The notes beneath the pieces were generated by a model, which was not told the origin of the DNA, made no database searches, and saw only the letters and a list, made by a program, of their open reading frames with translations. A DNA stretch of 64,000 nucleotides from Macrostomum lignano (lineage: Eukaryota): assembly GCA_002269645.1 (NCBI GenBank), contig NIVC01002813.1, positions 62,001-126,000 of the forward strand, given 5' to 3'. The position numbers and the translations under genes are program-made. This document shows, piece after piece, positions 19,701 through 25,700 of this stretch. Each line of letters starts with the position of its first letter. The first letter of the stretch is position 1.

Positions 19701-22700
19701 TCATTTCTGGCAAACTAGTGGTGAGCTCTCTCGGTGCTTCTTTGAACACGCTTGTCGCATTTCTAGCGCTCAGTTAACTTCTGTTCAAAATCATTTTTAC
19801 TCTTCAATTCGAGCCCACGCCATTGCTTTGTTATGCTGCACCTCTTAACTTTCGCTTAGAGCCAGGACCCAACGCAGCACGGAACGGGCAGGCATGTACG
19901 TCATATTGCTGAGCAAAAAGTGCACCCAATGTACTTAAGTACACTGTATGTAGTGCACAAGTGAATTGGCTACAGACAATGCACGAGCCACCCCCCCGCC
20001 CGAGTACAGTAAAGTATTGCAGATGCCGTTCAAGTTTATTGTACTTACTTGTTACTATTTGTGTCGTGCCGTTTAGAACATAGATGTATGTGTAAGTTTC
20101 ATTCCGCCATCTACGACTGTGGCAGATGGTGCGTCAGATGGTGCGTCAGATGGTGTGTCATATGGTGTGTCAGATGGTGTGTCAAATGGTGTGTCAAATG
20201 ATGCGTCAGATGGTGTGTCAGATGGTGTGTCATGGTGTGTCAAATGATGCGTCAGATTGTGCGTCAAATGACGCGTCAGATGGCGTGTCAAATGATGCGT
20301 CAGATGGTGCGTCAGATGGTGTGTGAGATGATGCGTCAGATGGTGTGTCAGATGACGTGTCAGATGGTGTGTCAGATGGTGTGTCAGATGGTGTGTCAGA
20401 TAATGTGTCAGATGGTGTGTCAGATGGTGTGTCAAATGATGCGTCAGATGGTGCGTCAGATGGTGTGTGAGATGATGCGTCAGATGGTGTGTCAGATGAC
20501 GTGTCAGATGGTGTGTCAGATGGTGTGTCAGATGGTGTGTCAAATGATGCGTCAGATGGTGTGTCAGATGGTGCGTCAGATGGTGCGTCAGATGGTGTGT
20601 CAGATGGTGTGTCATGGTGCGTCAGATGATGCGTCAGATGGTGTGTCAAATGATGCGTCATATGGTGTGTGAGATGATGCGTCAGATGGTGCGTCAGATG
20701 ATGCGTCAGATGGTGTGTCAGATGGTGTGTCAGATGACGTGTCAGATGGTGTGTCATATGGTGTGTCAGATGGTGTGTCAGCTGGTGTGTCAGATGGTGT
20801 GTCAGATGGTGTGTCAGATGGTGTGTCAGACGGTTGTCTCAAATGATTGTTCGGGAAGTTTCTGCTTAAATGTTCTCTTCGATAAGAGCAGAGCTGTGCA
20901 GCCCAATGGCTCCGCATCGCTCCTTTGTTCCGGTTCCGGCACTCTAAGTGCCATTTTAGTAAATTTTTGGCTTGACTTTGGCTGAAAACGCTTCGCTTTT
21001 TGGATACCATCGCTACTACAAAAGTACATGACGGCTTTGCTCAATATTTAGCTTTCTGTCCGGCTCAGTCTGAAGACTTCAACATTTCCGGTGTCATCCT
21101 GGATGTAGTAGGCGCCCGTAATTTAAAAGAGAAAATGCCTCTAAGAGTTTTTGGTTATTTGCTTTTGAAATTTCGTGTTCAGAGCTTTGTTTGCCAACTG
21201 CACCCTCATTGGTTTCGCAGTTATGTTGTAAAAGCTAGTTTTGATTCTACGTGTTAGCAAACAAGCCCTCAAGTTCTCGTTTCAGGATGCTTAAATTTCT
21301 GCTAAAAAATGTAGCGCGCGATTCTGCCGCTGCCAGTTGCACCATAATTGTTTGTTGCATTTAAATTGATAAAAATCCTGCTTCATTCTACTTTTGTAGT
21401 TAGTAGTGTAATTGCTCATGTATGTTAAAACGTATCATTAGCAAGAATATTTTGTCGAGTGAAATTTAACACGCCGCTACTCTTTAACCCGGATGTTCCG
21501 CAGGCTGGCAAAGCCACCATATCCATTAATTTCTTCCGGCTTTTCCGTGCCATGCGTCTGGTGAAGCTGCTGAACAGGGGCGAGCATCTCAGGACTCTGC
21601 TGTGGACTTTTATCAAATCGTTTCAGGTTGGTTTAATGCCATCTATGTAGTAATCTATAATGAGTTACTTAAGGATTTAAAGACACGTACTGGTTCATTT
21701 TTTCATCGTGTTGGACCTTCTCAAAGTTTGTGAGTACTCACTGGTACCTTCCCAATTCTTCCAGGCCCTGCCTTACGTCGCCCTGCTCATCCTCATGCTG
21801 TTCTTCATCTACGCCGTGATCGGCATGCAGATGTTCGGCAAAATCCGGCTGGACTCCAACACGCACATTAACAGGAACAACAACTTCAGGACGTTCTTCT
21901 CCGCTTCTCTGGTGCTGTTTCGCTCAGCCACGGGCGAGGCCTGGCAGGAGATTCTGCTGGCCTGCGTCAACGGTGAGCCGAGTGTCTTGATTCACTTTAC
22001 TCGTTGACTACGTTTTATTCTCTTGCGATGTACTTGGTGTTCAACGACAAATTGCAGGCGAAATTTAAAAAATTACATATATCCCGGCCAGGCTAGGAAA
22101 TCGAGACAAAAACAAGTCAGCCATGATGAGCCAGCCAATCAGCGAACGAGGGCTGCTTTCTGTTTTAGGGGGTAGTTTATTCAATAGACAAGGCAATCAC
22201 AATGAGCCAGCCAATCAGCGAGAAGCTACATGGGGCCTCGGCGCTGGCTTATCTGTGTTAGGGGTAGGAAAACTCGGCAAGGCAAACACGATGAGCCAGC
22301 CAATCAGCGAGAAGCTACATGGGGCCTCGGCGCTGGCTTATCTGTGTTAGGGGTAGGAAAACTAGACAAGGCAATCACAATGAGCCAGCCAATCAGCGAG
22401 AAGCTACATGGGGCCTCGGCGCTGGCTTATCTGTGTTAGGGGTAGGAAAACTAGACAAGGAAATCACAATGAGCCAGCCAATCAGCGAGAAGCTACATGG
22501 GGCCTCGGCGCTGGCTTATCTGTGTTAGGGGTAGGAAAACTAGACAAGGCAAACACGATAATTCAGCCAACCAACCAATCTAGAAAAAGTTTCGTGTGGG
22601 GTGAAACCGCGTTCTCTCTCCAACAGCTGCAAATCCAATTAAACAGAGCCCACAGTGCTATGTGACAAGCAGAGCGAAATCTACCAGACTTGGTACTCGA

Positions 22701-25700
22701 GGCTCGTTGCCAAAGTGCAGCGACTCTACGCCAACTCAACCGCGGAGCGGATCCACCTGCTGGAGCCGGACGAAATCGAGGACGGCTGCGGCAGTCCGAT
22801 TGCCTATCCATTTTTTATCAGCTTCTACATGCTGTGCTCATTCCTGGTGAGTCCCCAGCCTGGCGAATCTCACGCTCCCGAACCCCCCGCTGCTTCCAGC
22901 CGACACCAAGTGCGACCGGGCCAGCGATGCCTACGTTGATTGGCTGGCGCATAACCGGACTCAGGAGGAGCCGGTGTGCCAGCAGCTCATCGGCTATCCA
23001 TATTTTATTTCTTTCTACGTGATTTGCTCATTTCTGGTAAGAATGAAGCAAGATAATGGTAAACACGCAGGCCTTGAAGCTGATTGCACAGCCTGCAGCA
23101 TGGCTTGGAGTTTGGCATTCCTTTTCATTTCAAAACTTTTGCGGAGAGCAACCCGGAATGGCTGGTGGCTGCACACTGAGGCCTGGCCAAGGCCGCTTGC
23201 TGCTTTCATGCGCCACTTACCCTTGTATGCCGCTTCTGAAAAGTTCGTCTGCTGCACGCTCTGAACTGTTGACAGTTGCTTTTTGAAATGCCGCTTTTCA
23301 AGTGCTTGACAGCACCCGGTTGCACCTGGTATCCCTGGGGCTGCCAGAATCAATCGTACTCCTTGGTGTTGCTGGTGTCATCATTGCCTCTGGTATCCCT
23401 GGTATCCCTGGGATCCCATGGTATCCCTGGTATCCCCTGGTATCTCTGGTATCTCTGGTATCCCTTAGTATCCCTGGTTTCCCTGGGATCCCTGGTATCT
23501 CTGGCACTCTGGTATCCCTAGTATCCCTGGTTTCCCTGGGATCCCTGGTATCTCTGGTATCTCTGGTATCCCTAGTATCCCTGGTTTCCCTGGGATCCCT
23601 GGTATCTCTGGTATCTCTGGTATCCCTAGTATCCCTGGTTTCCCTGGGATCCCTGGTATCTCTGGTATCCCTAGTATCCCTGGGATCCCTGGTATCTCTG
23701 GTATCTCTGGTATTCCTAGTATCCCTGGTATTCCTGGGATCCCATGGTATCCCTGGTATTCCTTGTATCCCTGGTATCCCCTGGTATCTCTGGTATCTCT
23801 GGTATCCCTAGTATCCCTGGTATCCCCTGGTATCTCTGGTATCTCTGGTATCCCTAGTATCCCTGGTATCCCTGGGATCTCTGGTATCTCTGGTATCCCT
23901 GGTATCCCTGGTATCCGCTGGTATCTCTGGTATCTCTGGTATCCCTAGTATCCCTGGTATCCCTGGGATCCCATGGTATCCCTGGTATTCCTTGTATCCC
24001 TGGTATCTATAGTATCCCTAGTATCACCTGGTATCCCTGATATCCCCTGGTATCTCTGGTATCTCTGGTATCCCTAGTATCCCTGGTAATCCCCTGGTAT
24101 CTCTGGTATCTCTGGTATCCCTAGTATCCCTGGTATCCCTGGGATCTCTGGTATCTCTGGTATCCCTGGTATCCCTGGTATCCGCTGGTATCTCTGGTAT
24201 CTCTGGTATCCCTAGTATCCCTGGTATCCCTGGGATCCCATGGTATCCCTGGTATTCCTTGTATCCCTGGTATCCATAGTATCCCTAGTATCACCTGGTA
24301 TCCCTGATATCCCCTGGTATACCCGGTATCTCTGGTATCCCTGTTGCCTCTGCCCCGAAGTTTTGGATTTATCTATTTTAATCTTTCAAGACAGGAATTA
24401 TCGAACAAAAAAGGCTCGAAAAATGATTGCTTGCTCTGACAGAAAACTGTGCTTAGAAATGCTTGACAAACTTCCTAGACTTACCCTTATTGAATTTCTA
24501 TATACTGCTTCTCTTGCCAACGGCAGTCATCTTTTACCACCTGATTAGTTCGGCGAACTGAGCAGTGACCTAATTGCATGACCTAATCGCTTCACCCAAT
24601 AGCATATGTCCAAATGACCTAACGCCTCCACATCACCGCGCCAGATCATTAACCTATTCGTTGCCGTCATCATGGACAACTTTGATTACCTGACTCGGGA
24701 CTGGTCCATCCTGGGTCCGCATCATCTGGACGAGTTCGTGCGGCTCTGGTCCGAGTACGACCCGAGTGCAAAGTGAGCAGCGGTTCAAAAATTCGAAATT
24801 TACTTTTGTAAGCGATGCTCAACAAGAACATTGCGGCGCTTATAAATTTTCAGAGGCCGAATCAAACATTTGGACGTGGTGACGCTGCTGCGCAAGATCG
24901 ATCCGCCTCTGGGATTTGGGAAGCTCTGCCCGCACAGGAAGATTTGCAAGGTGAGCCTTCCTAATCAGGGTGAGAGTTCAGTTGATCAGAGTGAGGGTTC
25001 AGGTGATCCGGTTGAGAGTTCAGGTGATGATCCGGGTGAGAGTCCAGGTGATCCAGTTGAGAGTTCAGGTGATCGAGATGAGAGTTCAGGTGATCGAGAT
25101 GAGAGTTCAGGTGATCCGGGTGAGAGTTCAGGTGATCCGGGTGAGAGTTCAGGTGATCCGGGTGAGAGTTCAGGTGATCCGGGTGAGAGTTCAGGTGATC
25201 CAGTTGAGAGTTCAGGTGATGCAGGTGAGAGTTCAGGTGATGCAGGTGAGAGTTCAGGTGATCCGGGTGAGAGTTCAGGTGATGCAGGTGAGAGTTCAGG
25301 TGATCCGGTTGAGAGTTCAGGTGATACAGGTGAGAGTTCAGGTGATACAGGTGAGAGTTCAGGTGATACAGGTGAGAGTTCAGATGATACAGGTGAGAGT
25401 TCAGGTGATGCAGGTGAGAGTTCAGGTAATGCAGGTGAGAGTTCAGGTGATCCGGGTGAGAGTTCAGGTGATGATCCGGGTGAGAGTTCAGGTGATCGAG
25501 GTGAGAGTTCAGGTGATCGAGGTGAGAGTTCAGGTGATGATCCGGGTGAGAGTTCAGGTGATCGAGATGAGAGTTCAGGTGATCGAGGTGAGAGTTCAGG
25601 TGATCCGGGTGAGAGTTCAGGTGATGATCCGGGTGAGAGTTCAGGTGATGATCCGGGTGAGAGTTCAGGTGATACAGGTGAGAGTTCAGGTGATGATCCG

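Follow-up and report, generated by a model that had tools for sequence, protein, structure and literature searches.

The window analysed here, a 64,000-nucleotide (nt) stretch of the Macrostomum lignano assembly GCA_002269645.1 (contig NIVC01002813.1, positions 62,001 to 126,000 of the forward strand), contains a calcium channel alpha1 gene of the Cav1 (L-type-like) family in which two adjacent homologous exons, here called A and B, offer alternative versions of one part of the pore. Judged from an alignment with rabbit Cav1.1, the piece that would be swapped is the extracellular loop between the pore helices of domain IV and the sixth transmembrane segment of that domain (IVS6), together with the outer half of IVS6. 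We read the two as a mutually exclusive pair of which each mRNA would take exactly one, and give this reading a probability of roughly 0.7. The hallmarks of such a pair are present, namely adjacency, homology, equal phase, frame incompatibility and GT-AG splice sites. Positions below are those of the window unless another locus is named.

Two homologous exons encode alternative domain IV pore loops

Exon A (22647..22846, plus strand) is 200 nt long and encodes 67 amino acids (aa) comprising a long loop between the domain IV pore helices and S6 (the P-S6 loop) and the first half of IVS6. Exon B (22900..23036, plus strand) is 137 nt long and encodes 46 aa with a short loop and the same half of IVS6. 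Both run from phase 1 to phase 0 and they are separated by a spacer intron of only 53 nt (22847..22899, plus strand, GTGAGT...TTCCAG). With a slash marking the exon end, exon A is bordered by an AACAG acceptor and a CTG/GTGAGT donor and exon B by a TTCCAG acceptor and a CTG/GTAAGA donor. The acceptor tract of exon A is weak and A-rich (AATTAAACAG) and that of exon B pyrimidine-rich and strong, an asymmetry which, speculatively, would suit regulated use of exon A.

Each exon contains two cysteines and one sequon (NST in A, NRT in B), with 41 residues between the cysteines in A, 21 in B and 13 in rabbit Cav1.1, where the two cysteines correspond to C1338 and C1352. The two exons differ in length by 21 aa (63 nt) and in their IVS6 ends, which read FYMLCSFL in A and FYVICSFL in B, the Tyr-Met of exon A being the counterpart of Y1365/M1366 in the rabbit channel. 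Their global alignment scores 85 against 10.7 +/- 4.9 in shuffled sequences (z = 15, with none of 2000 shuffles reaching 85) and their paralogy is thus far beyond chance. The similarity is concentrated in the last 20 residues, 13 of which are identical, and the underlying 60 nt differ at 19 positions, including an AGC/TCT serine pair; in the rest of the loop A and B have just scattered residues in common. The paralogy, phases, lengths, spacer, cysteines, sequons, loop difference and IVS6 ends had all been claimed in a preliminary description of this DNA, and all are found at the coordinates and in the translations given here.

The same divergence bears on whether the pair could be an assembly artefact, either a collapsed haplotype or a spurious tandem duplication, as the preliminary description had itself considered. 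M. lignano shows hidden polyploidy, with numerous duplicated blocks that are almost identical (PMC5730564, PMC10468722), but exons A and B differ by 63 nt in length and at 19 of 60 nt even where they are best conserved, the identities elsewhere in the loop being scattered. Both sequences are present in two UniProt models that are independent of each other (P0121 and P0515), and the layout is also found in another genus. We consider an artefact already refuted by the divergence of A from B and assign it a negligible probability.

The host gene is a flatworm Cav1

Cav1 alpha1 subunits consist of four homologous six-segment repeats followed by GPHH/EF-hand and IQ regions, and have a selectivity filter of the EEEE type. 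Channel repeats II-IV and the C-terminus are encoded on the plus strand of the window, between about 7.5 kb and a point past 30 kb; repeats II, III and IV and the proximal C-terminus fall at about 8170-27190, and repeat I lies outside the window. The filter glutamate is present in repeats II (LTGEDW), III (TFEGWP) and IV (ATGEAW). A query protein of 1357 aa assembled from the window exons gave as its top matches three M. lignano clusters named 'voltage-dependent L-type calcium channel', followed by invertebrate Cav1 proteins, the top database matches being labelled L-type or 'muscle calcium channel alpha-1'. The first of these clusters (P0121, UniRef A0A1I8IQR8) is a model of the window gene whose exons map exactly onto the window, and it carries the Pfam domains Ion_trans, GPHH and Ca_chan_IQ. 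The domain IV fragment scored 279-297 bits against the solved chains of Cav1.1, Cav1.2 and Cav1.3 and 211-225 bits against those of Cav2.1-2.3, and on these comparisons we therefore identify the gene as a flatworm Cav1, in agreement with the preliminary assignment.

The exons flanking the pair are constant. The upstream exon (21765..21972, plus strand), placed by its translation, its splice sites and the mapping of P0121, carries IVS5, the pore helices and the domain IV filter glutamate; its translation includes ALPYVALL, and it closes in phase 1 at 21972 (...ACVN + G, donor GTGAGC) and aligns with rabbit Cav1.1 residues 1266-1343. It is followed by a 674-nt intron before exon A (21973..22646, plus strand). 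After exon B, an intron of 1608 nt (23037..24644, plus strand) leads to the downstream constant exon (24645..24772, plus strand), which encodes the second half of IVS6 and the proximal C-terminus.

Reading frame and spacer length as proposed layers of exclusivity

The lengths of A and B are both 2 mod 3, such that mRNAs with A only or with B only keep the frame. Joining the two full exons brings a stop codon inside B, and skipping both brings one three codons into the downstream exon. The exception is a cryptic AG within exon B (22909..22910, plus strand), through which entry at 22911 yields an in-frame product, A plus a truncated B (B'), with a duplicated half-S6. The preliminary claim that including both exons shifts the frame therefore holds for the full exons and had overlooked this in-frame site.

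That A and B' might be joined in one mRNA as a 42-residue insertion has in its favour this open joint and its presence in two database models (A0A1I8IQR8, A0A1I8GUC8), the site at 22911 being the one used by P0121 and P0515. These models are automatic, however; IIIS5 is incomplete in them, and they include an 'intron' just 11 nt long. A product in which the first half of IVS6 is present one and a half times cannot be accommodated in a four-repeat topology. The proper AG at 22898-22899 lies 11 nt further upstream and would normally be used first, and the intron would be just 64 nt. Entry at 22911 is judged to be a gene-prediction artefact and we think such an mRNA very improbable. The public models are wrong at this site more generally. 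In the UniProt models of M. lignano (P0121, P0515, P0123), A is either fused to a truncated B or left out together with B, and a GenBank model from the monogenean Cichlidogyrus casuarinus (P0062) joins both exons via internal sites. For annotation this means that the current UniProt models of the window gene are incorrect here, with both exons fused.

For the mutually exclusive pair we propose two layers of control. The first would be the reading frame, with mRNAs that hold both exons or neither running into an early stop and presumably being cleared by nonsense-mediated decay. The second would be the spacer, which at 53 nt is probably too short to be removed as an intron, giving a steric block; steric block and decay are both inferred from the layout. 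An accepted mechanism of exclusivity is a distance from donor to branch point of less than about 50 nt (PMC5740500), and the candidate branch-point adenines in the spacer sit at 25-35 nt from the donor. None of the roughly 20 introns of the gene is shorter than the spacer; the others measure 81-3688 nt, in a genome with a mean intron length of 1.1-1.4 kb (PMC5730564).

The choice itself may be influenced by an 89-nt tandem repeat of 4.3 copies at 22185-22570, in the intron before exon A. Each repeat unit includes a block of 19 nt (ATGAGCCAGCCAATCAGCG) that is complementary at 17 of 19 positions to exon B at 22934-22952, and the repeat could thus pair with exon B and mask it in the pre-mRNA. 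The energy of this duplex is only marginally unusual, an equally good value being reached by 22 of 1000 shuffled sequences and by 11 of the 460 genomic windows (p ~0.02), and we offer it as a lead and not as a finding.

Exon B has the marks of a maintained coding exon

To judge whether exon B is kept as coding sequence we built a profile from the last 20 residues of 23 distinct invertebrate Cav1 sequences, and randomly mutated exon A to the observed nucleotide distance between A and B in 2000 simulations of a neutral copy. The simulated copies scored 2.3 +/- 7.0 bits with a maximum of 22.1, and 49% of them acquired stop codons. The score is 32.4 bits for exon B and 39.4 for exon A, and as none of the 2000 simulations reached the score of exon B, this exon has by this measure been retained as coding sequence under purifying selection and is not a decayed copy. 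Where exon B departs from A in IVS6 it has residues that are frequent in other invertebrate Cav1 channels, such as the Tyr in YPYF and the Val after Tyr. Maintenance of exon A is indicated by its last block, 17 of whose 20 residues are identical in trematodes.

Distribution of the pair among flatworms

We compared the site in Macrostomum with loci from C. casuarinus, Paragonimus heterotremus and Opisthorchis viverrini. Cichlidogyrus (locus L001) has the same layout, with a tandem exon A of 494 nt, a spacer of 182 nt and an exon B of 227 nt. Both exons are 2 mod 3, in the phases seen in Macrostomum and with GT-AG sites, the upstream exon ending in phase 1 after ...CVNT and the downstream exon opening with IINLF. 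Exon A of this species ends in ...FITFNMVCSLL followed by GTGAGA and exon B in ...FISFYIICSFL followed by GTAAGT. A search for relatives with the Cichlidogyrus protein P0062 recovered three trematode orthologues, the remainder of the matches being mostly arthropods and vertebrates, with planarians, cestodes and polyclads yielding no locus.

The orthologues of Paragonimus and Opisthorchis have an A-type exon with a loop of about 190 residues and the end FYMVCSFL. Besides its 17 of 20 identities in the block running from the cysteine to the end of the exon, this exon has the start EPTV.CD in common with window exon A, which by these similarities is the orthologue of the sole exon found at the site in the two trematodes. 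No second copy is present between the flanking exons of Opisthorchis, a firm result, and none was detected in Paragonimus, whose intron has a sequence gap. As to the survey of the pair across flatworms that the preliminary description had called for, the layout was recovered in Cichlidogyrus, with a second copy lacking in Opisthorchis and undetected in Paragonimus. On present sequences the A type is the form that is widely kept, and B would either be of old origin with a loss in trematodes, or have arisen repeatedly.

Just before the acceptor of the IINLF exon in Opisthorchis (locus L003, ~37370-37409), one frame reads ...FHFGYPFFISLPHLIS, resembling GYPYFISF of exon B. The resemblance may be fortuitous, given the pyrimidine tract, or the remnant of a second exon that has been lost; nothing like it was seen in Paragonimus.

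Among the isoform sets of 118 invertebrate Cav1 proteins we found no variation at this exon, in a database clustered at 90% identity, which would merge isoforms differing by a single exon. We rejected this lack of variation as proof of absence for the same reason.

The trematodes raise the alternative that only exon A is used, B being a silent or very rarely included duplicate of no function. Opisthorchis has just the A-type exon and in Paragonimus just that type was found, the model of an M. lignano paralogue (P0122) shows just an A-like sequence, and we found no transcript containing B, nor any containing A, the collections searched being of proteins. Exon B, however, retains an open frame, both cysteines, the sequon, the S6 motif, a pyrimidine-rich acceptor and a GTAAGA donor, which sits poorly with a duplicate of no function when 49% of neutral copies acquire a stop and none attains the profile score of B, and the exon in the second position is also intact in Cichlidogyrus. 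We regard use of A alone as unlikely, albeit the strongest of the competing explanations.

Several points weigh against mutually exclusive use of A and B. Protein searches with the isoform A fragment, the 1357-aa protein and an A/B profile, in which matches were shorter than about 1.75 times the query length, returned no Macrostomum transcript fragment across any of the junctions. The UniProt models of the window gene are ab initio predictions, as well as being clearly wrong at this site. Since Opisthorchis has the A-type exon alone, and Paragonimus has it alone as far as detected, some flatworms manage with a channel built from A only. Identities in the 20-aa block (13/20 between the two B exons, 12/20 between window A and Cichlidogyrus B, 9/20 between window B and Cichlidogyrus A) cannot decide whether the B exons of Macrostomum and Cichlidogyrus are orthologous or of separate origin. 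The 53-nt intron may be spliceable in M. lignano, and the 182-nt spacer of Cichlidogyrus indicates that a steric block is not universal, although by the same token frame alone can suffice for exclusivity. In sum, the splicing switch proposed at the outset is supported in part, by the hallmarks, by selection on B and by the layout in a second flatworm; both exons are candidates for inclusion in mRNA, and the drug-binding part of the proposal is weakened, as set out below.

Predicted consequences for the pore mouth and for pharmacology

L-type channels drive muscle contraction and excitation-transcription coupling, and those of flatworms are long-standing anthelmintic targets whose pharmacology is poorly understood. 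In order to compare the two isoforms we modelled the fragment from IVS4 to the C-terminus with AlphaFold2, using 58 homologues. In the models both isoforms form a canonical S5-P-S6 unit, with block values of the predicted local distance difference test (pLDDT) of 86-97 in S5, the pore helices and S6. In isoform A the models place an extracellular helix of 20 residues (model residues 120-139, pLDDT 83-89), and in isoform B one of 9 residues (model residues 119-127). What differs most clearly between the two predictions is thus how large a helical turret rises over the pore mouth on its domain IV side, and on these models a switch in turret shape is better supported than a switch in drug pharmacology.

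Choosing A would give a long glycosylated loop from the filter to IVS6, with the helix of about 20 residues and Tyr-Met-Leu in the stretch of IVS6 that is said to border the opening on the III-IV side. Choosing B would give a compact loop, closer in length to that of other animal Cav1 channels, with Tyr-Val-Ile. In Cav3 channels, swapped extracellular pore loops alter the passage of Na and Ca and block by divalent ions (PMC7382465), and by analogy with these we infer that the domain IV loop is functionally relevant. The most likely effects would concern the form of the pore mouth (passage of ions, block by divalents and access of extracellular ligands) and, through IVS6, gating or inactivation, and we expect gating effects rather than a switch in drug sensitivity.

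The preliminary description had gone further and proposed that splicing switches dihydropyridine (DHP) or toxin pharmacology. In its favour, the change from M-L in A to V-I in B falls at the DHP contact pair in IVS6, where the Tyr-Met of exon A aligns with Y1365/M1366. Tyr-Met is found in exon A only, exon B having Y-V, and many invertebrate Cav1 channels have Y-V or Y-I. Two further positions of the site are altered whichever exon is used. IIIS5 reads VTFLLEF in the window gene and VTTLLQF in vertebrate Cav1 (P0249), a change of Gln to Glu, and in IIIS6 a Phe replaces the Tyr of the vertebrate IYIIIIAFFMM. According to a passage of PMC6796685 that cites Peterson 1996, high-affinity DHP binding is lost with the Tyr-to-Phe change in IIIS6, and the response of flatworms to DHPs is poor (PMC6796685). 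Because of the IIIS5 Glu, the IIIS6 Phe and this poor response, the full DHP site is probably absent in both isoforms. The toxin part of that proposal is purely conjectural.

If the pair is used, a single gene would supply two channels differing at the ion entry and in drug access on the III-IV side, and expression clones and drug screens based on a single isoform would miss half the picture.

An apparently independent pair in a spiralian contig

A 155-aa open reading frame (P0403) from an ENA metagenome assembly (ERZ24900295 ctg5808l) led us to a contig of 31% G+C, L004, whose Cav1 shares about 80% identity with the Cav1 proteins of molluscs and other spiralians. It carries two tandem exons, X1 (L004 10078-10237, 160 nt) and X2 (L004 10297-10453, 157 nt), both 1 mod 3 and separated by a spacer of 59 nt, among neighbouring introns of several hundred nt or longer. 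Each exon runs from R/[AS]ATGE (the slash marking the exon start) by way of the loop to FYVLCSFL, and the selectivity filter lies within it. Lottia gigantea has the exon borders of L004 with a single exon at the site.

The L004 pair resembles the window pair in belonging to a Cav1, in covering the pore module from the filter to the first half of IVS6, in having frame-incompatible lengths and in its ultrashort spacer. It differs in that the L004 exon begins one intron position earlier (R/SATGE) and contains the filter, and in that FYVLCSFL is identical in X1 and X2, such that just the loop varies. Because the borders of the duplicated unit differ from those of the flatworm unit, the L004 duplication appears to be independent of the flatworm one. 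We tentatively suggest, at somewhat less than even odds, that a splice-selected domain IV pore module arose at least twice in spiralian Cav1 genes (in flatworms and in L004), with ultrashort spacers (53 and 59 nt) enforcing exclusivity and a choice between long-helical and compact pore mouths. This would amount to a convergent route to two pore-mouth designs from a single L-type gene, with distinct permeation, block or gating, and together with the flatworm pair L004 would offer a natural case of convergence.

Relation to known alternative pore exons

Mutually exclusive exons are well established for Cav1.2 and Cav1.3 (IS6, IIIS2 and IVS3), for Cav3 (12a/12b), for NALCN and for insect sodium channels. 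In vertebrates, exon 8/8a exchanges an S6 segment and alters DHP sensitivity, and the known CACNA1C and CACNA1D pairs are equal in length. Those pairs, 8/8a (IS6), 21/22 (IIIS2) and 31/32 (IVS3), are like the window pair in that tandem exons swap one transmembrane module of the pore subunit, whereas the window exons sit at domain IV P-S6/IVS6, differ by 63 nt and remodel both loop and helix. CACNA1C is described as a mutually-exclusive-exon gene (PMC5740500), with reviews in PMC3596553 and PMC5748662. In the literature searched, vertebrate included, no alternative exons affecting the domain IV loop or IVS6 of a Cav1 came to light, in line with the preliminary description, which knew of none at this position in vertebrates.

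Further parallels exist outside Cav1. The invertebrate Cav3 exons 12a/12b likewise exchange a cysteine-containing extracellular pore loop of differing length, change Na/Ca passage and divalent block, and occur from flatworms onward, M. lignano included (PMC7382465). They differ in belonging to another family, in lying in the S5-P loop of domain II (D2L5, not D4L6) and in exchanging no part of S6; their function has been tested, that of the window pair being a prediction. In cnidarian Cav3 gene pairs the D4L6 loop varies in length and cysteine content, giving two channel types (PMC7382465), although the route there is gene duplication, not splicing, and the channel is a Cav3, not a Cav1. In the four-repeat channel NALCN, exons 15a/15b (or 31a/31b) are also tandem pore exons, with independent origins across invertebrate lineages (PMC4436565), in which respect they parallel L004. 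The NALCN exons change a filter residue (E versus K); in the window gene, by contrast, the filter Glu lies in the constant upstream exon, and both L004 copies keep Glu. If the pair is used as proposed, the 'alternative turret' principle of Cav3 and NALCN would extend to Cav1 and to the domain IV P-S6 loop.

A second tandem exon pair and other features of the window

The same gene contains a second pair of homologous tandem exons, copies a (10700-10806) and b (12798-12904), on the plus strand. Each is 107 nt long (2 mod 3) and encodes the linker between IIIS2 and IIIS3 together with IIIS3. A paralogous M. lignano locus (L006) also has both copies, at ~29899 and ~30949; its RNA-seq-based GenBank model P0519 uses copy b, and P0516, from another paralogue, uses copy a (the basis of the GenBank annotation is given in PMC5730564). 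The UniProt model P0123 wrongly fuses both IIIS3 copies. The L006 sequence stops short of any A/B exon, about 370 nt past the upstream exon of domain IV.

Minisatellites fill the introns of the channel gene and give rise to long spurious open reading frames. The intron 3' of exon B holds about 104 copies of a 9-nt unit, CTGGTATCC, at 23390-24343, and further minisatellite introns include those at 15908-16200, 18950-19400, 20100-20900, 25000-25950, 27300-28600 and 30950-34300. At 2001-6000 the G+C content falls to 25-29% with an extreme GC skew of 0.69-0.98, presumably reflecting a strand-asymmetric satellite upstream of the channel gene or inside its 5' part. Beyond the gene, inspection by eye picked out neighbours at 44158-44628, 46427-47092 and 50525-51940 on the plus strand and at 56069-56590 on the minus strand, whose translations comprise an EF-hand protein (myosin light chain/calmodulin-like), a universal-stress-protein-like reading frame, alpha-tubulin and a protein-kinase fragment.

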